Shown here: positions 3,332-51,200 of the stretch, piece after piece
How positions within the stretch are numbered: the first letter of the stretch is position 1
Layout of the letters: every line of letters begins with the position of its first letter
Origin: Takakia lepidozioides
Lineage: Eukaryota; Plantae; Bryophyta
DNA: 64,000 nucleotides
NCBI GenBank assembly: GCA_030704615.1
Contig: CM060731.1
Span: 34,844,001 to 34,908,000 of the forward strand
Direction: 5' to 3'
Made by a program: the position numbers and the translations under genes
Notes under the pieces: model-generated
What the model saw: the letters and a program-made list of their open reading frames with translations, nothing else
Databases searched by the model: none
Told to the model about the DNA's origin: nothing

Positions 3332-6300
3332 CTATGTGGCTGGTGCTGCTGCTGCCTTCGATAGTTCTGGAGAAATTTTCTGCAGATCATTCACATCCGA
3401 AACATTTTAAAGTTTACCATCACTCAAGTCTCTCTCCCATAGTGATACATAGAGGCACTCAAATACACGTAAGGAAACACTTGAATAGATCAATCAGCTT
3501 CAGGCCAAGGTCACTCACTTTTTCAGCTTCTGACTGGCACTGCCGCTGTTTCATCAAGCCTGGTAGTTCATGGTCCAAAATCTCATTGGCCCATGTGTAG
3601 TCCACAGGCACCTGACAGAGCATCAATTCGTGACCAACAAGCAAAAACTCAAGCACAGAAAGTCACTTACAGCCATGTTAAGTGAGAAGCACAGAGTACA
3701 TTAAGCTTCTAGCACATACGCTATCATGAACATGTGTCCTATCCTTGAGAAAGGAGAAGAACACATTACAAAGTACCTCAATCAGTTTCACGCCCACTTT
3801 ATGATAGAGGCATTCATGTAGAAGTTCCGATAACTCATCTGCACTATTGACGCGGTGGCCCTTGGCACCATAGCTGCAGTGAATCATGCATGATGTTTGT
3901 CACAGTATCAGCAGAGTGAGGACAAATTGGGTAGCATCTCCCTTCCTTTTACCCAATTATTACTCTTGTGTGGCAGCTCCAGTCATCTCTGGAATAAAAT
4001 CACATGAAATTTTATGATTCTCGATTTTGGATGCCTAAATTAACTGATTTTACAGAGTATATAATAGATGCAATTATAAGCCACAGCTTGCAACATTGAA
4101 ACTACCATATGGTGTATTTGAAGCTCTTTAACCCTCTCCCTTAGCTCCCCTTCCTTTTGTGTTCCGCTCAAACTGGGCGCGGTGTCAATGGCCACAAGGC
4201 TACTGCAAACAGAGTCTTAAGAGAACATTCTCTCTTAACTGCCTCAGCTGAGAAGCAGCTTTTGGAGTTGGTGCAAGATTTTTAAAACTTTGCTCACCTG
4301 TTTGCATAAGCCACAAAATCAGGGTTTGTCAAATCTAGCCCAAATCTGCAAGACGCAATTTCACAAAACAAAGATTAGCTTCCATCAGAATGAAAACTTA
4401 GACAAAGCTTGCTTATACAAAGTACAAGCTACCGTTAAGAACCAAAGATGAAGACAAAACAAAGAAGACTGAGATCAATGAAAAGTGGAGGAGGATGAGG
4501 AGAGGATGCAGAAACTCACTTCTGAAATCCAACTCCGTTTTGCTTCCACTTTATCATTCCAAATGCATTATCGTTCAAAACGATCACAGTTAAGTTTAGT
4601 TGTAAGCGCACTGCCGTTTCCATCTCCTGCACATCCTCTTACTATCGTAGTAAGTATCTCACTTACCAAGGTTTTGCCTCCTCAACTCCTGTGTGCAACT
4701 CTATCTCTATCTCCCTAAATTGTTAAAACTCATTAAGAAATCATAATAACAGACTGAGAAAGGGATCAGAGAAACCATGCCTGCGAATTCATCATAAAGC
4801 CTCCATCACCACAGAGGGCCACGACTTTCTTGTCTGGGTGAAGTAGTGCCACTGCTATTGCTGATGGTAGCCCTGCACCCATGGATGCTAGGGCATTGTC
4901 CAAAAGCACCGTGTTAGGCAGAAAGGCCTGCCCACCCACCCACCATTGCCCTTCATTTGACTAAGTCAAGTAGTTTTTTGTGCAACGATTATCAACACAA
5001 AGTTGAATCTTTCGTTTCTCCCAAAGAACTGCTAGTCAAGTGCTACAAGGTCTGTTGAAGGAATACAATGAAACAATGAATGAGTAATATGGCCAACTTC
5101 CTCCTTTTGATGCTATAAGACTCTTTCATTTTGCCGAAATTATCTAGTCCCTAAAACATTCAGGGTTGTGCACAAACATTGACGTGGGAGGATAGGCAAA
5201 AGGAGACCGCACCTTGTAGCATCTTGCAAACCAAATCTTGTACAATCCTGCCCAAATAAAGAGAGGTATATATTTAGCTACATGCCACTCTCTTTCTCAA
5301 GGAGTTCCTCTGCTTGTTTGTGCTCTTCTCTAACTGTGCTCTGCTTAGGAAGGCTGCAGCAGACAAAGAGGACAATGGAAGGTAAAGAGGTTTGAGAAGG
5401 GGAACAAATTTACTCACCATTGTCCAAGCAAATAACACCATCATCTGGCATCTGTTTCCTGCATGTCAGCAGTTTTCGGAGTATAAGACTTTGTCTCTCG
5501 CAGGGAAGGAAATTGTAGACCTCTACAGCCTCTAAGAATGACCTCGTCAGTAAAGTTACAGAAGGGGGTAATGCAAGAATAGAAGAACAAAATTCAAGGG
5601 GAGGAAAGGAGACCAGTTGTCTGATCGTTGTCAAGAACCTTTGAAACTTCTCTTTTGCTGGCTGACATGCAAAGACGAGACTACTTGCACATATTACTAA
5701 GAAGGAGTTCATCAACTTGTTGAATACCGTAGATCAGAAACAATTCGTTGAGGCATCAACGGAAAGCGAGGGTCATCTGCACCCTTGCACAAGTGCTGCT
5801 CCAGCTCTTCTCTCACCTACACCATAGACCACAATCACACGCTTCACAACTCACCATAACACTCCACCTTGTGGCAGGAAAGGCTATCATAATTCTTTGT
5901 CCTTTTTGACCCCCACGATTCCCTGTCCATACTGTCCTCTATTGTACCATCTTTTTACGGGTGTCTGTCTGTTCCTTTGCATCAGAAAGTGCTGGAACTG
6001 ATTGCACATACTTTTCAGCTAGAGTAGGCTCTACAGCCCACATGCAGTCTCCAAGTTATCTTTCCTCAACTTCACCCTGACATTCCACCACACCATTGCA
6101 AGCAGTGACTCTGTCTGTACCCTCACTTCTAAAGGTAAGACCAACATTTAGGACCAATATACCTGCATCATAAAAGAAAAATCCCAGTGGGATTGTGGCT
6201 GCAAGTGCTCCTTAATCTGCCAAATTGCATTGGCTATGTCTCCCACCACGTCCAGCTGCACAAAAGAAGCCCCACACTGGTCAATGCGTACCGCTCATAT

Positions 6301-17184: not shown

Positions 17185-19764
17185 TTACCAATAATCATTG
17201 CAGGAACACACCCCATTCTTGAAGTGATGAAAGCGGGTGGAATCCCTTGCAACAATTTCTCGCCCAACAACCTTAGAGATGAACTTGGTGGCAGTGTGAC
17301 AATCGCCACATACCCGAAGGTTTTTTATTATTCGGATAGGTGTCCCTGGGGTCGTGCTGATGAGCCCAAAGGCAATGGCCAGTTTTTCACTGTGGTGGCA
17401 GAGAGCCTGTTCCTTCTCACCTCCATTCACATTATGCAAGACAAAGCGCGTGTCTGGCACATATCCTGCCTCTTTCATAAGCCTCATTAATCTCTCCAAC
17501 TCAGTATAGATCTCCTCTGTTTGTGGGTGTGATCTATCTTCTGCAGTAAATGCATATACCATGCTCTTAACTTCAATCCAGGTGCACCCTGACTCCTTTT
17601 TCACACCTCTGGCCTCCATCACTTTTCTCACTTTTGCTACTTCATCCCACCTGCCAGATGCAGCATAGATGTTTGAAAGAATCACATACACTGCAGAATC
17701 TTGTGGTTCCAACCTGAGGATGTGGTATGCAGCCCGTTCAGCCAGCTCCACGTTGCCGTGAGATCTGCAGGCACCAAGCAAGGCTCCCCAGACAGGAGCA
17801 CCTGGTTCAACCGTCATTTTGCTGATCAAGTCCTCTGCCTCATTCAACATCTCTGCACGGCCAAGAACGTCAACCATGCAGCCATAGTGCTTCTCTGTTG
17901 GTGTGATGCCATGATCTCGACTCATAGAAATGAAGTAATGATGGGCTTCATCAACTAGGCCCACATGGTTGCATGCTGACAGCACACCAATAAATGTAAT
18001 ATTATCTGGCTTGACCTTGTGGGATTTCATCTTTTCAAAGAGTTGGAGGGCCTCCATACCATGCCCATGGTGGGCATATCCTATAATCATCGCATTCCAT
18101 GAAACAACATCTCGTTCAAGAATTCTGTCAAACACTTGCCGTGCAACCCCCACACTTCCACATTTGGCATACATGTCAACAAGGGCATTCCCCACACAGA
18201 CCTCTGACTCGAATCCAGATTTGAGAATGTTAGTATGGACCAGCTTGCCCTCTTCCAGGGCAGCTAGGCTGGCACAAATGTTGAGGATGCTAATGAAAGT
18301 CACCCTATCAGGCTTTACGCCTTCTCGCTGCATTTGTTGAAGGAGTTCAAATGCCTCTACACCATGCCCTTCCTGAGCATATCCTGCAATCATTGCATTC
18401 CATGAAACTACATTTCGTTCAGCCATTTTGAAGAACACTTGGCGAGCATCCACCAAACTCTGGCACTTGCAGTACATGCTGACAAGGGCAGTCCCCACTC
18501 GGACATCCGACTCAAGTCCCATAGTAATGATGCCTACGTGCACCCACTTACCCTGCTGCAGAAATGCTGGGATGGCACATGCATTGAGAATGCTCACAAA
18601 AGTAACCTTGTTGGGCTTCATGTCTTCCTGTTGCATTTGCCAGAAGAGTTCAAATGCATTTGTAGCATACCCTTCCTGAGCATATCCAGCAATCATTGCG
18701 TTCCATGAAACTACATTTCGTTCTGGCATTTTATTGAACACTTGGCGAGCATCCACCACATTCCCGCACTTGCAATACATGCTGACAAGGGCAGTTCCCA
18801 CTCGGACATCTGCCTCAAATCCAGCTTTCACGATGCCTGCGTGCAGCTGCTTACCCTGCTCCAGAGCTGCTGGGCTAGCACAGGCACTGAGGATGCTGAT
18901 GAAACTGACCTTATCTGCCTTCATGCCTGCCAGTTGCATTTGCCGAAAGAGTTCAACAGCCTCCTCACTGTGACCAAGCTGAGCAGATCCTGCAATCATA
19001 GCAGTCCATGAGACCACATCTCGCTTTGGCATCTTATCGAACACTTGCCGCGCATCCATCACCCTCCCATACTTGCAAAACATGCTGACAAGGGCAGTCC
19101 CCACATGCACATCTGACTCCAATTTGGAGTCAATGATGCTGGCATGGACATGCTTGCTTTGCTCCAGAGCTATTGGACTTGCACATGCGGGAAGGATGCT
19201 CATGAAGGTGACCTTGTTTGGCTTTACACCTTGTTGTTGCATTTGCTGGAACAGTTCAAATGCATCTTCACCATGCCCTTGCTGAGCTAATCCTGCAATC
19301 ATTGCATTCCATGAGATCACATTCCTCTTAGGCATCTTGTCAAATGCTTGGCGTGCATCCTGGATACTTCCACACTTCACATACATGCTGACAAGGCTGT
19401 TTCCTAGGAAGATATCCGACTCGAATCCCCTTTCAATAATGTGGGCATGGAGCCCCTTGCCATCTGCCAGGGCTTTTGTTTTGGCACACTCCTGCAAGAG
19501 ACCAGCACAGGTATCGCAATATGCCCGAAAGCCTCGTTGTTCCATAAGATCTAGAATATGTATTGCGTCTTTGATTTCTCCAGTATGGCATGTTGTGGTT
19601 CTCACATTCTCAACAGTTCCACCAGTATGCTTGTTGCCTCCCCCTCCCGTTGGCCTTTGAATGTGTCTTCCAGGACAAGCAGTGGTGATAGGAGACATGC
19701 CAAGACCTACACCCTTGCCCCCACTTTGATGCTGAACAATGTGCTTCCAAACTTGAAACCACAT
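17185..19764 (-). CDS. PLS-DYW pentatricopeptide repeat protein, organellar C-to-U RNA editing factor
   Basis: 859-aa intronless ORF from ATG. It has a PLS array, E/E+ domains, a PG-box variant (KKESGCTWIEV), the deaminase Zn motifs HSEKLA and CGDCH, and terminal CSCNDYW. Confidence 0.96.
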   Translation of the reverse strand: MWFQVWKHIVQHQSGGKGVGLGMSPITTACPGRHIQRPTGGGGNKHTGGTVENVRTTTCHTGEIKDAIHILDLMEQRGFRAYCDTCAGLLQECAKTKALADGKGLHAHIIERGFESDIFLGNSLVSMYVKCGSIQDARQAFDKMPKRNVISWNAMIAGLAQQGHGEDAFELFQQMQQQGVKPNKVTFMSILPACASPIALEQSKHVHASIIDSKLESDVHVGTALVSMFCKYGRVMDARQVFDKMPKRDVVSWTAMIAGSAQLGHSEEAVELFRQMQLAGMKADKVSFISILSACASPAALEQGKQLHAGIVKAGFEADVRVGTALVSMYCKCGNVVDARQVFNKMPERNVVSWNAMIAGYAQEGYATNAFELFWQMQQEDMKPNKVTFVSILNACAIPAFLQQGKWVHVGIITMGLESDVRVGTALVSMYCKCQSLVDARQVFFKMAERNVVSWNAMIAGYAQEGHGVEAFELLQQMQREGVKPDRVTFISILNICASLAALEEGKLVHTNILKSGFESEVCVGNALVDMYAKCGSVGVARQVFDRILERDVVSWNAMIIGYAHHGHGMEALQLFEKMKSHKVKPDNITFIGVLSACNHVGLVDEAHHYFISMSRDHGITPTEKHYGCMVDVLGRAEMLNEAEDLISKMTVEPGAPVWGALLGACRSHGNVELAERAAYHILRLEPQDSAVYVILSNIYAASGRWDEVAKVRKVMEARGVKKESGCTWIEVKSMVYAFTAEDRSHPQTEEIYTELERLMRLMKEAGYVPDTRFVLHNVNGGEKEQALCHHSEKLAIAFGLISTTPGTPIRIIKNLRVCGDCHTATKFISKVVGREIVARDSTRFHHFKNGVCSCNDYW

Positions 19765-26004: not shown

Positions 26005-26823
26005 CGAGATGAATTCAAGGTCAGATGGTGGGGTCAGCTGCAACTTATGCCCAACAACAGATATCCTAAGTTAATCGACTCTATATCTTGGAAACAGGAC
26101 TGCCCTGTCAAACAGGCTAAGTCCTGGCAGAAGAGAGTAGAAGAGATCCTCAAGGACCTGGACCTGGATCCGCAAGTCTTGACCCTGCTGGATAAATCTG
26201 ACTTAGAGGCTGTAGTGTCCTCAGCCATGGCTGTTGCCATGAGATTGTCTGATGAAAATGAAGTTAGGCAGAAAACTTCCCTGAACTTGTTTCCAGTCTG
26301 TGACATGGGGGAGGACATCTTGGATGACCTCAAGGGTCTACCCACTCTCGGCACTAGACTGAAATTTAAACTCAGGGCAGGAAGCCTACCTTTGAACAGC
26401 AAACAGAAGCAGAGAGGAAAGGGAGAGTGCAATTGCCCGTTGTGTGGGCAATCTGAAGACAGTATTCATTTTCTGATACACTGTCCGGGGTTCTCTCACC
26501 AAAGAGACGCTCTCTTCAAATCTATTAAGGGAATTGTGCCTGTACCCCTGTTTACCAACTTTGAAAGTCTCGAGGCTGAGCCAAAAGCCCAGGCCCTCCT
26601 GAGGCCTAGTTATTGGGCAAATCACACACAGCAGATTGATGCTTGTGTGAAGGGATTTCTAGAGGATATCTGGAAAACCCGGATTCATTCTTTATATGGA
26701 GGTAAGTCTTACTACCAACGTCAGCCCCTGACAGAGGTAGGTTCTGTCCCTTTTGTTCCCGCTCAAACTGGGCGCAGGGTCAATGGCCACAAGGCTACGG
26801 CAAACAACGTCTTATGAGTACAA
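26005..26823 (+). mobile_element. Non-LTR retrotransposon family A (RTE/RTEX-like C-terminus), 5'-truncated, with 15-bp TSD
   Basis: 256-aa ORF 26047-26817 with the C-terminal CCHC-type motif CPLCG..ED..HFL..C. Perfect direct repeat tctcttgagctatga at 25990-26004 and 26824-26838. Clade assignment is tentative. Confidence 0.9.
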
Positions 26824-27294
26824 TCTCTTGAGCTATGATCTAACACATTGTGTGGAAACGTGTCCAGATTATCGACTCAACCACCGTATAAAAGAAGAAT
26901 GCGCTGAAGACATCAACAGACTCTGTAGAAATAGCTGCCCGACCAACATGGGCTCCTTTTGTGGAGGGAAAATGCTGAAGTGCTTGACAGATCACATCGA
27001 CAAACTACAGTCAAATGCATGTAGAAGTGCAGTTTTTTCTTTTGAGAAGAATCAAGTTACAAATGTGCAGCTCGAGTTACCTCTCCGGGATGCCTGTAAA
27101 GATGATCTCATGCAGATGTCAGCAAGGACCACAGCCACACTCTCGGGTGTCTGCAGTCCCATCATAACCAGCTGTCTACAAACTGCCAGTTTGAAGAGCT
27201 CCGTTTCTCTATAATGGAGGTGTGCTTTCTTTCTTTGAGCTTCCCAGGGTTGCTATAAAGTTTCTCTCTGTTGCTTCCCCTACTGCCATAGAAC

Positions 27295-27700: not shown

Positions 27701-29292
27701 GCCCCTCTCTCTTTCTTGTTTCTTTCTTCCCATTGTCCCATGAGCTTCCTTTATAAGGTACCTCGTCATTTCTTAGTGGAACACTCCCTTCAACGGGGAG
27801 TCCCCCAACATATTCCTTTCTTGATTTGGATAAAATATAACTGTACTGGGGCTCTTTTACTCTAATAGTCTTATGCCCGTGTTACTTGTCTTTGACTACA
27901 GTTGGCATTTGTTACTAAATAATTGTTTGAGCTTGCAGGCATCAGATATCAGGCTCACTCCATCTTTGATGAATGTCTGTGGACATGGTAACTTCCCTTC
28001 TTTCTACTTCTTCATACCGCTGGAGTTCTGAATTTAATGAACCATGAAGCGTACTGTGAATTATGTTTGGGGGTCACCTGTGGCCTTGTCAAATACAGTG
28101 ATCAATCAGTTATGGGTCCTTCGCATATATATTCAACCTTTACTTCTTGTGTGACAGAGCTGAACTTCTGCAAATCAGTGGCACCAGACAAGGGCGACGC
28201 TTTTAATTGCTTGCAACTTCATTTGCAGGCAGTGGAGATGGTTGCCCCATGCAAAGGGGAGGTGAATTTGCAGGAGCTGCGGCATGCTTCAGATTATCAA
28301 TGCGATGTGTGAGTTCGTACGGAGTGCCAAAATGATGAGGCCTCACTCTGTAAAGATGTCAATACGTCTGAGGAGGGGCATGCCTCTATGCTCAAGTGCT
28401 TTTTGAACAAGTATAAGATGCTCTCTGGGGGCTGCCAAACTGAGGTACTCCTACCTGTGCCAACATGTTGTGTAACTTACAAGGAGAGAGCTTTCAAAAT
28501 CAGAAAACAGCTGCCAGTTACTGGACAGAAGAAGCAGCTTATCTCAGTTCATCAGTAAATTCTGAAGAACATGTGGTTTGAATGGAGAATGGCCTGGGAT
28601 GTGAGTGATGTGAATGTAGCATATGCTGTACGAATGGCACTCTGGTAATACAGCATGGGTGCCAATCTTACTACAAGACACTGTAATACAGTGGATATCA
28701 AAGAGATCAACAATGTGTGATAGGAGTTTATGGCCAGTGTCTCACCTCATAGCCAATTAAAAGCCTCAAGAGTCATGGGTTCAATTCCTGACACATTGCA
28801 TCAACTTACATATTAATATACATGAAAATGACCAATGAAATTTCATTGATTTTTGAACAAAACTATATATATAGATATATTGTATGATGAATTTATCAAC
28901 ACGTACCATAATGATGCCAACTCGAGTGGCATACCGAGTTGACACAGATAAAATGGTATCAAAAGGTTCAACCACATGTAGATGAGTGATGTAGCCGGAA
29001 GTGGTTTTGGTAACGGTATACCAAGGGCAAAATGATGTGCCAGTGGCGAAGACTCCACCTCTGCAAACGAGAGCGTATATACAATGTAGATCATGACACT
29101 CCACAAGAGTGAAGCGTACATGATGTCCATCAGACATGCTCAGCCCACGTGTCATAAGTTGCCCCAACTGGTCGAAAAGATGACCTCCATCTGGAAACGC
29201 CTCTATGTTGGCAATATGAGCAATAACCTCGGGGCCAGCATCTTTACCCTCCCACTTGGCAATGGATATACATGATAACAACCCGCAGCCAT

Positions 29293-31313
29293 GACAATGG
29301 TGCGAGGCTTCTATTGCTTGCTTTATTCATACATTTGCTTTCCAAATTTTGCTCTCCTTGCTTTCTTTATGTTGGGCACTGTTCTGAAGTGTGGTTCTCC
29401 ACTTTGCAGAACATGTCCATTGAGGAAATGGCGGACATGTCATCTTGCAATTTGGCAGAGACTGTGCACAACGCATGGTTGCAACAGTCTAGGAAACGAG
29501 GTCGGGATTTGTATGTGGCAACAACAGATGATCTGATACGTGCCTTGCAACAACAAACCAGGATACAATGATTTCTTGCGAGGTGGGGTTGGTGGCAAGG
29601 GTCCGGACAAACTGGAGTTGATGTTGCGTGCTGCAAGCAGATCTGGGGATCCAAGCAAGATAGCACGGGCGATGAGCATGTATGCCCAGGGAACGCCACT
29701 TGTTTCTAGAGTTCCACATCTTGAAGGGGAGGAGAGATCCGGCTCCTGTAAGAGGAAATTGAACACCCCACCTGGTTCGGATTCCGATTCGCACATGGCA
29801 GACCTTGATAACTTCTCGAAGCCTCGTGTTCCCTTGCATGAAAGATCTATGTCCGGAACCTCCATTTTGGAAGAACCTCCGACACGACGACAAGCTCCAG
29901 CATCAAACAGTGCCACTGAAATGGTACAGGAGAGAAACTACCCCCTTGATGTGCTGGAGTCCGCATGCCCCGACCACGTTTGACACATAAAACGCACAAG
30001 TGCAGGGTCTCGTGTGAAATGTACAGCGATTAAGGCAACTAATTTCGAAAAGTGCACTTCATCTATATCCAGAGGCGGTGCCCGGACTCTTGCTCCGACT
30101 TTCACGGGTTTGATGCGTCCGTACGGCCAACAAGAAGCCAAGAACCACAAGTTTTGGTTCTGTGCAGAGCCATCGTGCACGCCTTCATGCCCTGATTCTA
30201 GGGCTTGAGTCCCTGTCTGCCCCCTATCCCATTGTGGTAGATGTGTGGATGGAACTGTGCGTCCTTCCGTGGTGATGAAGCCAACTCCTCAAACCGTTTG
30301 GCCCGTCAAGGTGCGAGCACATCTCACAAGTCAGAAGATTGCAATGTTGGAGGAGGCAGGCTTTTCCCTTGCGAGATAACCCCAACTGCATGCATGTGCT
30401 TCTACTTCTGCGTCCTCTCGGGTCCCTCCGGCAAATCCTCACTTGTGGCCAACCAAACGAGATGAAAAACTGGTTCGGTGTTTCCCTCCAACCGCTGAAC
30501 ACTTCGGCAAAGTGGAGTTCGCAAGAATGCTCCAAGCTCGTGTTGCAAGCACCACGGAAGTGCCCGATCCAGGATATGGTCGGGTGTACACAATGATCAC
30601 TTCAACATCTGTTCATGACAGGGCCTATGACATCACGGTTTCCAATTTTCCCAATTGCACATGTCCTGATTTTGTGAATATGTTATCAACCAGTTTGGGG
30701 AAGAGAGATAAATTCATACCCTGCAAACATTTGTATTTCATATTTTTGAATAGGATGGTTTGCGATCCCAAACGTGACAACTTCGTTCACCAGGCCACTC
30801 TGAGTTTCAACGAGGTCGATACTCTATTGCAGCGGGATACAACACATAGGTAGCATCAACTATGCAATGTGGTATGTGGACGACCATGCTATGAAATGTG
30901 CAATTTGCAACATTGTCATGGAAATTCAATTCAAATCAATTCGTTTGCAACATCGTCGGCGGTGCAATGATATTGCGTCCCCTATCCCTCCATTATGCTT
31001 CCCTATACTGAGTGAGCTCTGAGTGACAACTTTTAAAAGCACATGCATCATTGCACATTTCGAAGTCTAAATGTTTCCTGTCGCTATGCATTGTAATCAT
31101 CTGTTGAAGATGATCCTAACTCTCATTGTTATTTGGGGAGGAAGCAAGGTCTTCCCGTGGCAGCCCCTATGGCGCACACTTTGTGAAGATATTTTCTCGT
31201 CCTTGTAATTGTAAAAGTGAAACAAATATTTGTAATTGCATAATGTTGGATGCTACAATTGTAGGCCTCATGGTAGTCTTGATTGTATTCAGCCAAGGAT
31301 TCCCTGCATTAAT
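29293..31313 (+). mobile_element. SWIM zinc-finger (MULE-related) element fragment inserted into the transposase
   Basis: Broken ORFs 29411-30853 end in the SWIM motif CTCPDF...PCKHLYFIF. Flanked by an 11-bp imperfect direct repeat, cccgcagccat (29282-29292) / cccacggtcat (31314-31324). Confidence 0.7.
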
Positions 31314-32508
31314 CCCACGGTCATATGACCATCCTCACAAAACAACTCCAATGCAACCTCACATACCTAAAAAAAAAAAAATCACATTAATAATTAACAT
31401 GAATGAAGTGACGTGTATCATACTTACAATGGTTGTAAAGATTACGTTACTATAACCAAATGTTTGGAATTGAATAAAACCTATCCGCCTTTGCCGTAGT
31501 GGAGTCGCGAGTCGATACCAAGTTTGACAACTACTTCATCACCAACTCGGCAACCAAAACGCTTCTCATAACACAATATCATATATGTGATCCATGCCTC
31601 AATGCTATCAACTTGCACGCCATATGTAACACCATCCGTGCGGCCCTACCCAAGCCCTGATGCTGAAACCTCGGTATAGAACTCCTAAACACAACAACAA
31701 GTTTAATTTTAATATGAATTCATATTGAAGTGAATATATAAAATACATAAACTCACAAACGTAATATAAATATGTATGCACAAACCAATAAATTAAAACT
31801 AACCTTCATCCGCTGAACGACATTTGTGGAATTAATGTTATTGAAAATGCCATACACATCAAACGACTTAAGAAGTCTCAAAGTGTTGTGAGTCATCCCA
31901 GTATCAACCATCAATGCTGCAATCCGTGTAGGGTCAAAACATTGTCGTATCTTTGTCAATACACGATCTGCCTCACGGTCACGAATAATAGGCCATACAT
32001 CCCAAGTCTGAACAATGTCGACGAGTGCCAAATGACGGTGCTCTATACTCTGGCCTATATATTGAATGACCCTAGAGCTCTCACTATCATGACACTCAGC
32101 CATTGGTACACCAGTGACAACAGATGCCAGATAGGTCATGCCCCACCAGTATTGCCACCTACGACGGTCATATGCACCAGAACCCGTCTCCAAATCACAT
32201 ATGGACAATCTCTGACGAGAGCTCGGCACCGGAGTAACAAACCGTGTGGTGTATGAATGCGGGCCAATAGGGACACGTATTGGTACACGCATGTCAGCAT
32301 GACCCGACTGTATAGTATGAGCAATATCCACATCGACATCAGCAGTCATAGAGACTGTACTATGAGCTGGAGTCATCTTGGGTATATCACTGTGACCATG
32401 AATGACTCGCTCAATACTCTCTAATGCCGCACCAAACTCATCTTCAGTAAGAGGGGGGGGGGGACATCTGGGTCAGGAACGAGATCCGTGTCCTCACGAT
32501 GATGAACC

Positions 32509-32559
<51 letters not shown>
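32509..32559. repeat. (TCA)17 microsatellite encoding a poly-Asp tract on the minus strand
   Basis: Direct reading. It translates as 16 consecutive Asp in ORF 32421-32804. Confidence 0.95.
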
Positions 32560-32977
32560 ATAATAATGCGACTTGGAGTGGAGGCTCCAACAGGTATGAT
32601 CGAAGGACCAGCGATATCTTGATGCAACTCTAATGCGACTGTCTGACGTACCGGTCGACTACCAGATCCACTGAAATGTAATTGTCCTGTCCATGGGGTG
32701 ACTAGGGTTGGAACAATGTCAGGGGCTCGATGACGTTGAGGCCTTGGTGGAGGTCTACGATCTGGCTCAAAACTGAGGGGCAAACCGGAAGAGTCGCTTT
32801 CCATACTTTATTTGACGGTAATAATCATGTTGAGCCCATCATAATTTTACATATTGACCCGCCAACACACAACAACAAACAAACATAAATCTTATGTATA
32901 TCAAAATACATAGTAAGATAGTCAAAATTTATTATATGATTAGATATTATATTCCCATTCAATATCCGGGTCAGTGA

Positions 32978-33137
32978 AGCGTAAAATAATGGTGTTTCTT
33001 GACCCCGAAGGACTACTACCTTCCAACATGAAGGTGGACACCTTTGTGACACCAATCAGTGGGTTCAACTCACAACCATTTCCGAGATTTTTATCCACCA
33101 CCTACTCAATTAACATTGCTATGACAGTTCCATGTAA
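32978..33137 (-). mobile_element. Degenerate copy of tRNA-headed SINE-like element
   Basis: Shares tggtgtcacaaaggtgtccaccttc...gaagg...ccttcggg...acaccat...tttacgcttc with the 34086-34268 copy. Flanked by tcagtga repeats (32971, 33138). Confidence 0.6.
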
Positions 33138-33248
33138 TCAGTGACTCCGTCGGACAGAGCCCACCCGAAAGGAGGCAGTTGCAACTTGCATAAACAATAT
33201 TCTTTCATGTTCGAACCAATGTTGTACTGGTATATCACTTTGCGCCTA

Positions 33249-33664
33249 GGTATGAGTAAGGGTATTGTAGAACATATCGGTTGGGTACGTCTTGGGGGCT
33301 TATACCCCGACTATATCCTGTACCCTCGGGTGTTGAACATTGGACCTACTCCCTACCTACCATACCACTCTAAGTATGGACTATTTTCATACTCCTTTAG
33401 ACCTGTATTGAGGATTGATGAACCCAAGCTAACATGGGTATGTGTAACGATACTCCTTATTTGTGCTTATCCTCATTCACATTTGTGCATTAATGTAGAA
33501 CATAACACTATATCTTTTGCAAATTTTATTCCAAAAAAAATAAAGAAATCATTCTCTACATATCCTATATTTACACATACATAATATATACTCCTAATAT
33601 GTCATACCATACACTTGCACATATAGACCTAGTATCTACATTTAAAATTTGACTTACTCATGCC
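33249..33664. mobile_element. MITE-like element
   Basis: Inverted repeats ggtatgagtaag (33249-33260) / cttactcatgcc (33653-33664), each flanked by TA. Non-coding, AT-rich interior. Confidence 0.4.
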
Positions 33665-34085
33665 TAGGATCAGGGTATGGCCCACATATGAATACTCATA
33701 CCAGCCATGTACCCTATCCACGCGGCCACTGTGGATGTACACTAGGCTCTACCATCTTGGCCTTAAAGGTCCATTAGGTATACCATGACCAGCCTGGAAT
33801 GTTAAAATGGACATACCAGTACAATACTGGTTCGAACCGGATAATGAATGAGATTCATCGTGTCCCATCCAACATTGAATATGTAACATTTTACCTATTC
33901 AAGCAGCTATTGAATAGGTGCACTGACCATGATGCTCGAACAATGCCCATTCAATTGATAATATATAATTTAAGTCGTTCACATATCATTGGAGGTATAT
34001 GGACTCAATACAATCAGTAATAAAGTAATGAAAGGGTTGATCCATGATATCGCCTAAACCCTAAAAGTATTGTTTGATTCATAAT

Positions 34086-34268
34086 ATTTAATATTTAATA
34101 TTTGACGCCTCCCGAAGGAAGCGTAAATTATGGTGTCTCTTCATCCCGAAGGGTTATTGCCTTCTACTAGGAAGGTGGACACCTTTGTGACACCAAGGGT
34201 GGATTGAACCCACAACCACTTCAGTAGGTGGTATGTACCCATTACCACCAGGCTACAACTTGGCTGTC
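34086..34268 (-). mobile_element. tRNA-derived SINE with structured body, tandem-repeat tail and 12-bp TSD
   Basis: A box TAGCCTGGTGG and B box GGTTCAATCC. 3' tail (AAATATT)3. Direct repeat ttgattcataat at 34074-34085 and 34269-34280. Confidence 0.75.
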
Positions 34269-35399: not shown

Positions 35400-36993
35400 A
35401 GATACGCTCCTAGGGGCAAGGTTTGAGGGAGACTTTAGCACTTCCACATATATGTTATGGTGTTGCCTCTGGATTTGGTTTCCTGGACAATATGTGGGGC
35501 TTCCTCTCCTACGTGGGGTTTGCTAGGCTGCCAGCTTCGGGGCTTTTCGACGTTCGTATTATCAACCTCATGGATGGAGCTTGCAATCCTCAAATCCCCC
35601 CCCCCCCAAGGTGCTGAGACTCATTGGCTTGCATCTTTCATCTTCATGTGGTTTCTCAGAGCACCCCTTGCTAGGCTTCAATTTGACCCTAGCGAGTGGA
35701 GGTGGATAGACTCAAAGTACACCCCCTTTTTGGGGTATATTGTCAAGATGGGTTACAAGCTCCTGAGGCCTCCCAGACCCCGCACTCAGATCTGGAACAA
35801 AAAATGGGGTTTGAATTTGGATCTCCTAGCTTGGAAATATGTTTGGAGGCAGGTCTGGCATAAGGCGCGTGCTGCCAAAGTCAGCGCATTTCTCTGGAAG
35901 TTTGTTAATCAAATTCTTCCAGTGGTTTCCCCCCATCCCTCTACAGCAAAGCCCTGCCTCATTTGTACCCGCTCAGTGCCTGAGAATATTGAGCACTGCT
36001 TGCTCCAGTGCTCCCTTGCGAATGTTGTTTGGTCTCGGGTCACTATCTTCTATGCCTACTGGCACACCCTCCCCCCCACTCTCTCCTGATTTCATTCTTC
36101 TCAATTTGAATCAGTCTTCTGCTTTCGCTTCTTGCTTTGTATGGTGTTGTTTGCGAGCACATACTCTTTGCCAAATATGGAAATGCAGATGTGGTTTTAT
36201 TTTTGGGGGAGTGCACCTCAGCATCAAACTGATCTTATTTGGTATATTTTCGGTTTCGATGACTGAGGGGAGGAAAGCTTGGGCTGCTCTTTTGGCAGCC
36301 ATTGACAGGTATTCAGAGAGAAGAAGGGCTCAATTGTTTCAGGACTTCGAACCTCCTGGGCGAAGGGCAACATCCTCTGCACCCGTCACTCGGACTCTAC
36401 GATCTCTTGGCATGATCAGCAATGGCAGCCCCCTTCCAGAATCTGAGGATATGGATGTTAATTGGGGCCACCGTAAATGACGTGCAGATCGTATCAAGGC
36501 GCATCTAGACTTCTAGTTCTATGCCCTGCTCTGCCCCTTCTGGCATTGTCTAGCTCTGACCTTAGTTTAAGATCTGTAGTTCCTGGCCTGTGTTTTTGGC
36601 CTTATCTGTTTTTGGCCTAAGTGTTGTTAGGTCTGTTGCCCTACAGCTCAGCTATGTTGCTATGGGCTGTAGTTTAGCTTCCCCTTTAGTGTTCTGGTTC
36701 TTTCTGCTCTGTTGCTCGGTTCTGCTGCATCGAGTTGTGGTTAGGCTTGCCCTTTAGTTCATGCTATGGAAGTTCTCTTATTCCTCGTGTCCACTCTCTT
36801 TTTGATAGACTGGCATTCTTTCCCCTCTTGACCTCCCTGGTCTTGAGTGTTCTCAATAGTTTCTTGGTTTCGGGGTAGTATCCCCTTCATATGCTTTACG
36901 GTTGTATCCCAATGGGTTATTTTTTCCCGTTATCTTATTAATATGATTTTCAGGGCCTCCATCCCCTTTTTATTTAAAAAATAAATAAATAAA
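35400..36993 (+). mobile_element. L1-type LINE 3' fragment (zf-RVT domain, 3' UTR, A-rich tail)
   Basis: W..VW...RAAKVSAFLWKFVNQILPV...CLIC...ENIEHCLLQCSLANVVW is the zf-RVT signature. Frameshifted. Ends in the A-rich tail aaaaaataaataaataaaa at ~36976-36993. Confidence 0.85.
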
Positions 36994-48200: not shown

Positions 48201-51200
48201 CTTTCCCACAATGGCGACTTAATATAGTGCTCAACCTTGCTGGTCTGAATCACGACACAGACACCGCATATTTCTCACAGAACAGAAGCTGAGTAGTGAC
48301 ACAAATAGCAGGCATTTCAAAAGGATGGGGTAAAGTGTGAGTTGTGCACAAGTACCTCGTCGGTTCACAAATGCGGGAAGCCAGAAGGTGAACATGCACA
48401 TCTTCTAGCCGGCGGAGATTTTTGCCAAATGTGGAGTTTTTTCCCAGCCAACTCCCAAACCTATTAAAATTCCGCTCTCCCTGCAGCCCATGTTAATCAT
48501 ACAATCAACAGTGAAGAATGTTAGAAACAATCCCAGATGACATGATGCCACAAGTATAATGTTAAGGAAGTAGTCTAGTCATAGGGAACTCTAAAGAGAG
48601 AATCATTTCTCAGATGCATACCCTTTCATGCCAAAATATTACTATTTGCAGAGGATTCTACCAACCAACAAAGAATGACACTCTTAGCGACTTATCCAAC
48701 AATCCTGAGGAAACAGGGACTGTGCAGATTGCTGAAGGCAACGTCAAACCTGAGGAGAGATGAAAGCAGACATTAGCCTTCCCTCACAAGATAAGAATCT
48801 TCCCAATTACCTGAACTAATGTCTCCCGCTGACCATGCATTAAAGCCGCCCTGCCAACCCCACATTCAAGTATATCCCCCAACAGGTAAGTGGTGCAAGT
48901 ACATAGTGTTGGAAATAGCAAGGTGCTGTGCTCCAAAGAACTAAGGATGATGGTCTTGCTACGTCATCATTAACCCTTGCAAGCATTTAAAAAAGAAATG
49001 GAGCCATACGGGATAATAGAGGACATAAAAGCTCCCATCTGAGCATGCTGCCACTGACGGAACCTCCGGATCTGCACATTCACTATGTCACCCTCTGCTA
49101 TACACATAGCAGCACGAGCTGCCAAGTCCATCCGCGCAGTACCATTCTCATCACGGCCAGCATCGCTAGGACGATAATTCAAATAGTTTTCCTGTATTGC
49201 ACAATGAAAGCTCAATGCTTAGATGGACTTGAGCAGATAACAATAACTGAGAAAACTTTACGTCCAAATATCCACACTCTGAGCAGCAAGCTTGCCATCC
49301 CATCCATGTAAGTGCAAGCTACAGAGAACGCAGACACCATATACAATGCAAAAGAAGAAGCCTGTGAAACAAGAACTTGTAAATCTACCTTGCAATAGAT
49401 CAGAAAGAAGGGGAAGACCTTGGAAGAACCAAGGCACAAATAGCAATGCATCCTTGAATCTTTGTGAGTCAATATTCAAGTCCAAGACAATTCAGCTATT
49501 TCCTCAATGGCATGGACTCACTGCTAAGCGATCCTATATGTGAATACAATAGCATTTGTTGACAACCAAGAGCATATCCTCTGCAAGCTGGCTACGACAT
49601 TCTCGGAAGACATTACTGGCAAGTACTGTGGGGAAACATAGGCGGCAGACCGTATGACAACCAACAGGTTGAGATTCTTTCCCAGGGAAGTCCTCCTATT
49701 TTAGAAACGGATGCTTGGACAAGGGTTGCGCCCAACTTTCCCAAATCCACCAATAAGTGACATCTAGTCCATGCTTCATCAGGTGCTTTCAAAGAAGAAG
49801 CTGGCTCTTGCAGATGTCCAAGATTGTCCCTTATTACTGAAGAAAACCCTTAATAACAAGTCAAAAACTCCTAGCAAATAGAAGACCACAAGAGTGTTGG
49901 AGTGTCAAGGTTATAGCCCTTGCACGGCACTTTGAGAACAGAACGGGACGGGTAGCTCAGTGGTAGAGCACCCCACCGGAATGGGGGAGGTCCTAGGTTC
50001 AATCCCAAGCCCGACCACACGCCAGTGGTTCTCCAACATGGTATCAGAGCCAAGGTTGGGGCGGTGGTCAGAATGGGTGGGCATTAGCTATAAGGGCTAT
50101 GCCTTGAGGGGGAGTGTTGGAGTGTCAAGGTTATAGCCCTTGCACGGCACTTTGAGAGCAGAATGGGACGGGTAGCTCAGTGGTAGAGCACCCCACCGGA
50201 ATGGGGGAGGTCCTAGGTTCAATCCCTAGCCCGACCACACGCCAGTGGTTTTCCAACAAAGAGAAATTACAAGTCTCCCAGAAAACAGGACAGAAAGGAG
50301 CACCTGAATAAGCAGAGGCACCAAATCAAAATCTGACATGGTTGCATCCATGCGTTCCTCCATCCGCAACCGGCCTCCATCATATCCCAACAACCTGCCT
50401 CCCACCCATGCCATGTCACTTCATGCCAGACAGGTTCCAGAACAAAGCATTACTTTCAGCTCCTATCCATGCAATAAGCTGCTACTTTGCCAATTGTAGG
50501 AGTCCTTTTCTTCATTGTGTGGTGGAGAATGCAAAAGGATTGGCCCCCATTGGAATGCAATGAAACTGTGAGAGAAGTGGAATCTGAGTTGTGTTCCAAT
50601 GCTTCTACAGCCAGAACAGGCACTGCAGCATTCTTGTGGACAATGGGAAAAAGGAGGAGTTGGCATCAGTATGCAAGTAAACTTAACTGAGAGAAGTAGA
50701 ATCTGTGTAAGAGGATAACCTAGGTATGAACTTGTTGGTAAAAGTGAGTTCATAGTAAACTGGAATACTGACTTGTCAACGGCAGAGAAAGGACTGATGT
50801 CTTGATCCTTGCCACTAGCCATGAGGCGGGTGTGCATGTCAGCGTATTTCACCACTCGTGTACGCAAGCTCATGTACTGGAGCTGGTTCAAAGCCATCCG
50901 CATGTCCCCACTGACCCGCTCAGCCAGCTCCTCTAGCGCTATCTGTTACCACAACAGTTCTTTTTACATTATGTGGACAAAGATGGCTGGAACACTGCAG
51001 TGTGTGCCAAAACAACTGTCACTAGTGATAAGGTCAAACCATTGACGAAGGGATGGGGCCAAGATGGCTCCTGAGATGTCTACTGACATACCCAAAATCA
51101 GCTCCATTGCACTTGTCTCTGAAATAACATAACAGTAAATTGTTCATGTATAGGGAGCCAAACCAACACTGCTCAAAGAGCCTCCAAACAACATCACCAA

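Follow-up and report, generated by a model that had tools for sequence, protein, structure and literature searches.

Can a plant genome contain a gene for a transposase built like RAG1? The question is raised by a broken gene in 64,000 nucleotides of DNA from Takakia lepidozioides (contig CM060731.1, positions 34,844,001 to 34,908,000); this whole stretch is referred to as the window, and coordinates are positions within it unless a locus is named. The gene lies on the minus strand, and a first-pass annotation, made from the sequence alone, had interpreted it as the remnant of a Transib/RAG1-related DNA transposon with a LysM-like domain behind its zinc motif. RAG1 is the enzyme that shuffles antibody genes, and both RAG1 and Transib are known from animals and from a small number of other eukaryotes. 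According to Kapitonov and Jurka (PMC1131882), recognizable Transib elements seemed to be absent from plant genomes. In the literature we found no report of a Transib element from a moss, a bryophyte or any of the Viridiplantae, the repeat table of a liverwort lists zero, and no report of a RAG1-like family of the kind described here was found for plants. Based on the analyses below, we suggest that the locus probably holds a land-plant gene in a non-functional, 3'-truncated copy and that the protein of this gene family is a DDE (Asp-Asp-Glu) nuclease or transposase built like RAG1 and Transib.

Sequence reading and comparison with relatives delimit a spliced gene that runs on the minus strand from 32804 to approximately 28731; the first of these limits had been recognized before, whereas the other had been placed at 28775 and the copy continues beyond it. 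That the minus-strand exons form a spliced gene at all is borne out by the relatives. An exhaustive search of 1.84 billion representative proteins with the second part of exon 3 (28907-29281, minus strand) returned 30 relatives, 12 of them at E ≤1e-10 and the best at E 2.3e-26 with 46% identity, and exons 1 and 2 are colinear with the related locus L010 (38-48% identity, E 1e-35). None of the approximately 50 relatives has a Pfam family, and the three that carry a source name are each listed only as 'hypothetical protein'. The relatives fall into two clades, i.e. the clade of the window copy (L006/L007, L008, L009-L015 and L016), in which the second part of exon 3 has 47-50% identity to L006-L011, and a sister clade (P0007, P0012, P0010 and P0031-P0036). 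The idea that the exons are chance open frames and that there is no gene would have only the lack of a Pfam match in its favor; we give it practically no credence in view of an E-value of 2e-26 to independent sequences, introns in common with the relatives and colinear homology over approximately 400 residues.

The gene model comprises four exons, all on the minus strand. Exon 1 (31804..32804) encodes the N-terminal region with a poly-Asp tract in two overlapping frames that switch at a run of C, and from approximately 32229 on it can be aligned, at 38% identity, to the N-terminal exon of L010. Excision of intron 1 (31685..31803; GT..AG, 119 nt) gives an ungapped 19-residue match to L010 over the junction, and L016 has an intron with a similar start at the same point. 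Exon 2 (31481..31684) encodes a hairpin and helix that precede the ribonuclease H (RNase H) core and then strand 1 of this core, in which the first Asp is located (codon 31513-31511); its identity to L001-L007, L010 and L011 is 33-48%. Intron 2 (31367..31480; GT..AG, 114 nt), the donor of which follows directly on the TAG at 31483-31481 and the acceptor of which follows a run of T, has a position common to L006, L010 and L016. Exon 3 is split by a foreign insert. Its first part (31328..31366) reads VCEVALELFCEDG, corresponds to strand 2 and matches the VCEV.LELL of all relatives; its second part (28907..29281; 125 residues) contains strand 3, helix 1 and strand 4, the second Asp in the motif ECHD (codon 29092-29090), the motif CPWY (29029-29018) and, at its end, the first half of the LysM-like segment (28978-28907). 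Intron 3 (28788..28906; GT..AG, 119 nt, phase 0) interrupts this segment. It had been recognized as a GT-AG intron but with its start at 28904, which we correct to 28906. The remnant of exon 4 (28731..28787) consists of ELNP, a TGA (28775-28773), approximately 13 more codons, RHWP and a TAA, where homology ends. The position of intron 3 is occupied by an intron in every genomic relative, and the intron is absent from L008, a 573-bp contig with a frameshifted processed pseudogene that reads straight over the junction. L008 thus implies that the family gene is transcribed and spliced as modeled.

What does this gene encode? Because no sequence profile matched, a relative was folded with AlphaFold, i.e. 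L001:10130-11008 (293 residues, alignment of 36 sequences), in which the counterparts of exons 1-3 of the window form one continuous exon. The model has a mean pLDDT (predicted local distance difference test score) of 60.6, with core residues 110-240 at 70-92, and begins with a hairpin and helix, after which three strands, a pair of helices, another strand and a last helix succeed one another in the RNase H arrangement. The motif GID lies in strand 1 and ECH(H/D) where strand 4 passes into helix 2; DDE enzymes have their first two catalytic residues at these sites, and the window has Asp at both of them. In an exhaustive VIA comparison with 48,161 solved chains, the top six matches were four RAG1 entries, HzTransib and BbRAGL (Z 6.5-5.2, root-mean-square deviation 2.8-3.6 over 113-134 residues), and the next chain followed at Z 4.2. 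Among re-scored Foldseek candidates, the best 34 entries were all RAG1, HzTransib or RAGL (Z 6.6-5.2), below which came Prp8 (Z 4.1), HIV integrase (3.7) and Hermes (3.2); Foldseek itself gave probabilities of 0.93-0.98 for HzTransib and RAG1. Using protein-language features, the nearest clusters to residues 255-458 of the L001 relative were those of RAG1 (0.97-0.93, 175-197 shared features), which carry the RAG1 pre-RNase H, RNase H, ZnC2 and ZnH2 families, and a Transposase_21 cluster reached 0.93 with 143 shared features.

The order and spacing of motifs had been claimed to resemble those of RAG1 and Transib, and the model of the relative agrees: one Asp lies on strand 1, another after strand 4, and a Cys-x2-Cys motif, which reads FCPWC in the relatives, follows 21 residues past the second Asp position. 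The downstream exons, which are conserved among L001-L006 and L010, add a C-x2-H motif (YC(A/T)RHA), an H-x4-H pair (TPY(F/I)HIQ.AH) and, in the clade of the window copy, KNE..ERKH with a conserved Glu approximately 20 residues after the His pair. From the sums of exon lengths in the relatives, the second Asp position and the Glu position are approximately 275-292 residues apart. RAG1, Transib and RAGL (mouse RAG1 4WWX and 6CG0, HzTransib 6PQN, amphioxus BbRAGL 6B40) have (i) the same pre-RNase H unit and RNase H core with the same placement of the Asp residues, (ii) the same Cys-x2-Cys approximately 20 residues after the second Asp and a long insert with an x2-His motif, and (iii) a His-x4-His followed by Glu approximately 20 residues on, at a similarly long distance from the second Asp, which are the putative equivalents of the His and Glu residues of the family. 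The published second Asp-Glu spacing is 206-214 in Transib and 253 in RAG1 (PMC1131882), and in RAG1 the ZnC2 module gives two Cys and the ZnH2 module two His to one zinc, with His795 in the active site (PMC7204232).

Combining the model with the motifs, we suggest that a member of this family would have a small pre-RNase H unit and then a catalytic core of the RNase H type, in which strand 1 bears the first Asp and the second comes directly behind strand 4. The Cys pair would follow approximately 21 residues on, and the His pair would come after roughly 270-290 further residues, which include the C-x2-H motif, with the Glu approximately 20 residues beyond it. If it works like RAG1 and Transib, an intact member would hold one zinc between the Cys pair and the His pair, and its Asp-Asp-Glu triad together with a divalent metal would nick and then cut DNA. 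The window copy, with its broken frame, stop codons, insert and lost zinc Cys and without the His pair and Glu, is incapable of any of this.

The damage to the window copy is extensive. A single frameshift lies within the run of ten C at 32460-32469, and there are three in-frame stop codons. As reported before, two of these are TAG codons beginning at 31648 and 31483: the former (31648-31646) stands in place of the Trp of GLGW, a motif that L010 and the relatives in the sister clade retain, and the latter (31483-31481) is the final codon of exon 2. The third is the TGA after ELNP in the exon 4 remnant, which has approximately 13-19 codons fewer than the family before RHWP. In the exon alignment, RHWP corresponds to RHWPMDR of the family and stands at the right profile position, but its match to the hidden Markov model (HMM) is weak when taken alone (E 2.4). 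CPWY had been read as a decayed CPWC, and given that the relatives read FCPWC where the window has FCPWY we agree; one zinc ligand is lost. The later exons with the C-x2-H motif, the His pair and the Glu were not found in the window with tblastn using the exons of L001 and L006 or with exon HMMs. A remnant of the C-x2-H exon suggested by eye at approximately 28670-28560 was unsupported by the HMM, and a 13-bit match at 11911-11624 is probably due to chance. In total, the window copy is 3'-truncated and has lost its C-terminal third, to which the His pair and the Glu would belong; that the copy is dead and that the third catalytic residue is lost had been proposed in the first-pass annotation.

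The two clades differ in what has become of the catalytic residues. The best members of the clade of the window copy retain both Asp residues, CPWC, H-x4-H and the Glu. Many members of this clade are decayed (L006, L008, L010, L016 and P0002-P0025): in L006, Asn replaces the first Asp and the first codon of the ELNP exon is a TAA (4606-4608), L010 has an in-frame stop (2638-2640) where the window reads Arg, L016 has a frameshift at GLGW, and the Cys pair is lost in several fragments. L006, L010 and L016 are the best-preserved relatives in this clade, and each has at least one disabling change; some of these changes could be assembly errors. In the sister clade, the second Asp is replaced by His and the Glu by Ala, Ser, Leu or Gln. 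The sister gene in L001, L003 and L004 (52-94% protein identity) lies between DnaJC11, which is found upstream where the contig reaches (L001, L003 and L004), and an unannotated single-exon open reading frame of approximately 1100-1190 residues downstream (L001 15079-18645, L003 15019-18527, L004 6548-9868). The same frame follows the sister gene in L005 (5646-8837), which extends the range of lengths to approximately 1060-1190 residues. This reading frame is split over two frames in L003, and the copy in L001, which was the one checked, has no Pfam family. The ratio of nonsynonymous to synonymous substitutions (dN/dS) in the sister clade is 0.02-0.20 at dS 0.31-0.46. Because of the fixed neighbors, the strong purifying selection and the lost catalytic residues, the sister clade is a domesticated and catalytically disabled host gene. 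We suggest that the family may have given rise both to the decaying copies in the clade of the window copy and to the domesticated host gene in the sister clade. The latter is paralleled by FHY3/FAR1, derived from Mutator, and DAYSLEEPER, derived from hAT, which likewise are single-locus, syntenic genes under purifying selection with replaced catalytic residues; the sister clade differs from these in coming from another transposase group, for which no domesticated plant example was found in the literature.

How firmly can the family be tied to RAG1 and Transib? Several observations count against doing so. The Z-scores of 6-6.6 are modest, and the tool warns that Z <8 may mean only a common arrangement; the Foldseek E-values are all at least 0.013; and the model, with its mean pLDDT of 60.6, is that of one exon of a relative and not of the window protein. 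At the sequence level, neither the exons nor the relatives gave a relevant Pfam match at E up to 10, be it to a RAG1 or a Transib profile, and family profiles searched against the sequences of the Protein Data Bank gave no RAG1 or Transib chain. The exon with the His pair and the Glu (83 residues), when folded alone, gave three helices with non-specific matches, and its H-x4-H and Asn-Glu are putative counterparts of the RAG1 His pair and Glu. RAG1, Transib and RAGL differ from the family in further respects: the family is found in a land plant, has many exons and an unrelated N-terminal region in which no nonamer-binding or RING/Chapa region was recognized, and has approximately 26 additional residues after the Cys pair, which include the LysM-like motif (from exon sums); inverted ends resembling recombination signal sequences and 5-bp duplications were not found for it, and no RAG2-like partner was seen. 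For the N-terminal piece (207 residues), a word-based homology search gave no match, and a PUF assignment from a language-model search (0.89) was weak and judged to be noise.

Alternatively, the family could be a divergent member of the CMC (CACTA/Mirage/Chapaev) group, and its RAG1 matches would then reflect the kinship of CMC and Transib together with the lack of a solved CMC structure. CMC transposases agree with the family in their overall layout (Asp, Asp, Cys pair, His pair, Glu) and are common in plants, and multi-exon transposase genes, as in the family described here, are usual for the CACTA elements of plants. The Protein Data Bank holds no CACTA/CMC transposase and, therefore, the clean separation of RAG1 in this database is insufficient to exclude CMC. 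Among the predicted structures of the ESM Atlas, the nearest ones with a name belong to arthropod clusters with Transposase_21, which occupy rows 1 and 5, the other rows having no common family (168-202 residues aligned, template modeling (TM) score by query 0.45-0.50); they fit about as closely as RAG1 does. CMC and Transib are close kin to the extent that Chapaev has been assigned to either (PMC4411706; bioRxiv 10.64898/2026.08.26.747230). However, Transposase_21 and its companion domains, DUF4218 and DUF4216 among those tried, matched no piece of the family at E up to 10 or any other threshold tried, and by language-model features the RAG1 clusters rank above Transposase_21 and have more shared features. 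Moreover, the His pair of the family, with its x4 spacing, would fit RAG1 rather than CACTA, in which the spacing is x3. On this evidence we consider a CMC origin unlikely. Similarly, it is possible, although we are inclined to doubt it, that the window copy was never mobile and arose as a pseudogene by duplication within a host gene family, the ancestor of which was an anciently domesticated transposase. A search around the window copy gave neither terminal inverted repeats nor target duplications, and in the merged 12-kb L010+L009 locus there were likewise no target duplications and no inverted repeats >16 nt; with one truncated copy and relatives at single loci, element ends elude definition, and mobility is putative. 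In addition, intron positions are common to the relatives, the L010-type gene is one and the same locus in 13 contigs, and the sister clade is clearly a host gene. A scan of metagenomes for more loci added one new short contig only, leaving too few loci to compare flanks. On the other hand, members of the clade of the window copy are decayed nearly everywhere we looked, yet the best of them keep the catalytic residues, as transposon families do. Taken together, the data place the family in an assemblage of RAG1/Transib and CMC, and we lean toward RAG1/Transib. Thus, of the earlier proposal of a Transib/RAG-related transposon, the fold, the motif order and the position of RAG1 and Transib as the nearest solved structures stand, but a sequence profile match does not accompany them. 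The likeness is supported at the level of predicted fold and motif architecture and not as superfamily membership; we do not file the family as Transib because sequence similarity was not detected and element ends were not found.

Does the zinc module of this family carry a LysM domain? The segment after CPWC fits the LysM consensus without gaps over approximately 43 positions: exon 3 closes with the first 25 of them and exon 4 opens with the others, the order of the consensus being kept across the intron. It has the pattern of LysM (PF01476), h-x-V-x3-DT-I/L-x2-I/L-x3-Y ... L-x-E-L-N, at the right length, and the DT(I/L), the Tyr, the Leu and the (E)LN are conserved in both clades. The reading of ELNP across the intron, already suggested in the first-pass annotation, is supported by the relatives, in which the same exon starts with EMNP, ELNE, ELNA, ELNK, ELNP or EINP (L001-L005, L010 and L016), as well as by the junction in L008. 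That annotation had also considered that ELNP might be a chance reading of an antisense B-box (28777-28788). Neither ARAGORN nor Rfam found a tRNA, tRNA-like gene or SINE (short interspersed nuclear element) there, and the same exon start in the relatives and the intron-free L008 therefore identify ELNP as a true exon start and the likeness to a B-box as a coincidence of the antisense strand. In the model of L001, helices lie on DTINSLCLSY and on the next turn, the exon showing the first helix and the start of the second. The exhaustive search with the window exon also matched a true LysM protein (P0030; E 2.5e-4), which itself matches Pfam LysM at 1.4e-66; the score sums four near-identical repeats and therefore amounts to one match of approximately 23 bits.

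These data, together with the additional residues between the Cys pair and the x2-His motif compared to RAG1, argue for a genuine LysM domain inserted in the zinc module. The following data argue against it. Pfam LysM did not match, at E up to 10, the halves of the segment from the window, L001, L002 and L010 or the processed copy P0003 (searched exon by exon), and each of the P0030 repeats contributes 23 bits at most. In a profile made from these repeats, only the window scored well, its half at 23 bits, and other members reached ≤5 bits and the second-half exons did not score; this profile is too narrow to inform. The segment also differs from LysM in being split by an intron and in occurring in an intracellular nuclease, not in a secreted or wall-binding protein. 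Finally, the Cys pair of RAG1 is directly followed by a strand and a helix that end in Ser-Asn-Pro and, therefore, the segment may be a native element of the zinc module that merely resembles LysM. In the literature, the combination of LysM, transposase and RAG1 led only to unrelated papers. The motif that had been described thus exists, is conserved and is in order over the intron, but neither half matches the Pfam profile, and that it is a LysM domain in the proper sense is conceivable but rather doubtful to us. The checks on relatives that had been proposed along with it gave CPWC in the relatives, the Glu in the clade of the window copy and the LysM-like motif in both clades.

The insert that splits exon 3 (29282..31327, 2046 bp) is a decayed coding fragment on the plus strand. 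It had been recognized before with the bounds 29293-31313, which we correct based on the contiguity of the two halves in one exon in L006, L010 and L016. Removal of 2046 bp, a multiple of 3, gives an ungapped alignment with the relatives and, thus, neither the additional frameshift nor the stretch 'GCYHVYP' that had been placed at the insert is needed in the protein; the only frameshift of the gene is the one in exon 1. Within the insert, plus-strand frame 0 is open at 29537-30850 save for three stops. It has a match to the SWIM zinc finger (Pfam, E 0.0016, 18.3 bits) just below the cut-off of 19.6, and a Mutator-like Glu motif was recognized by eye, the core of the Mutator-like element itself being absent from the fragment. 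No inverted ends or target duplication of the insert were seen. On the basis of these motifs, the insert is a candidate for Mutator-like coding debris.

The remainder of the window contains genes and mobile elements of several other types. An intact, intronless gene at 17185-19764 (minus strand) encodes a pentatricopeptide repeat (PPR) protein of 859 residues with E, E+ and DYW domains (Pfam DYW_deaminase, 1e-44) of the type of organelle RNA-editing factors; a PPR-DYW gene implies a land-plant genome. An open frame at 26753-27214 (plus strand) with two Cys_rich_FGFR repeats (Pfam, 4e-11) is probably an exon of a gene of the Golgi-apparatus-protein type. Tails of open reading frames of non-LTR (long terminal repeat) retrotransposons are found on the plus strand at 35457-36089 (Pfam zf-RVT, 7e-09) and at 26047-26817, the latter with a similar Cys/His motif and no Pfam match. 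Upstream of the broken gene, a tRNA-derived SINE with a head consisting of an A-box and a B-box lies at approximately 34118-34265 (minus strand), and a 5'-truncated second copy with 81% identity over 107 nt lies at 32976-33082 (minus strand), approximately 170 bp upstream of the pseudogene ATG. Between the two SINE copies is a 629-bp unit resembling a miniature inverted-repeat transposable element (33209-33837) with 33-nt inverted repeats that are 85% complementary. Two tRNA-like cloverleaves with an irregular anticodon loop, found by ARAGORN, lie 220 bp apart at 49946-50018 and 50166-50238 (plus strand).

The window copy itself is an inert relic, and the interest lies in the family, which is currently unannotated in genomes. 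In its boldest form, which we regard as improbable and offer tentatively, the proposal would be that mosses have their own branch of the RAG1/Transib lineage, i.e. a multi-exon DDE transposase with a LysM-type module between its Cys and His pairs, that has been the source of decaying copies and of a disabled host gene next to DnaJC11. If real, the LysM-like segment would allow the zinc module of RAG1 to be compared with a naturally occurring variant. If the family is what its predicted fold suggests, plants would have acquired domesticated transposase genes from one more source, and the RAG1-type cutting machinery would have a wider distribution than is known at present, the more so as sequence profiles do not detect the family.

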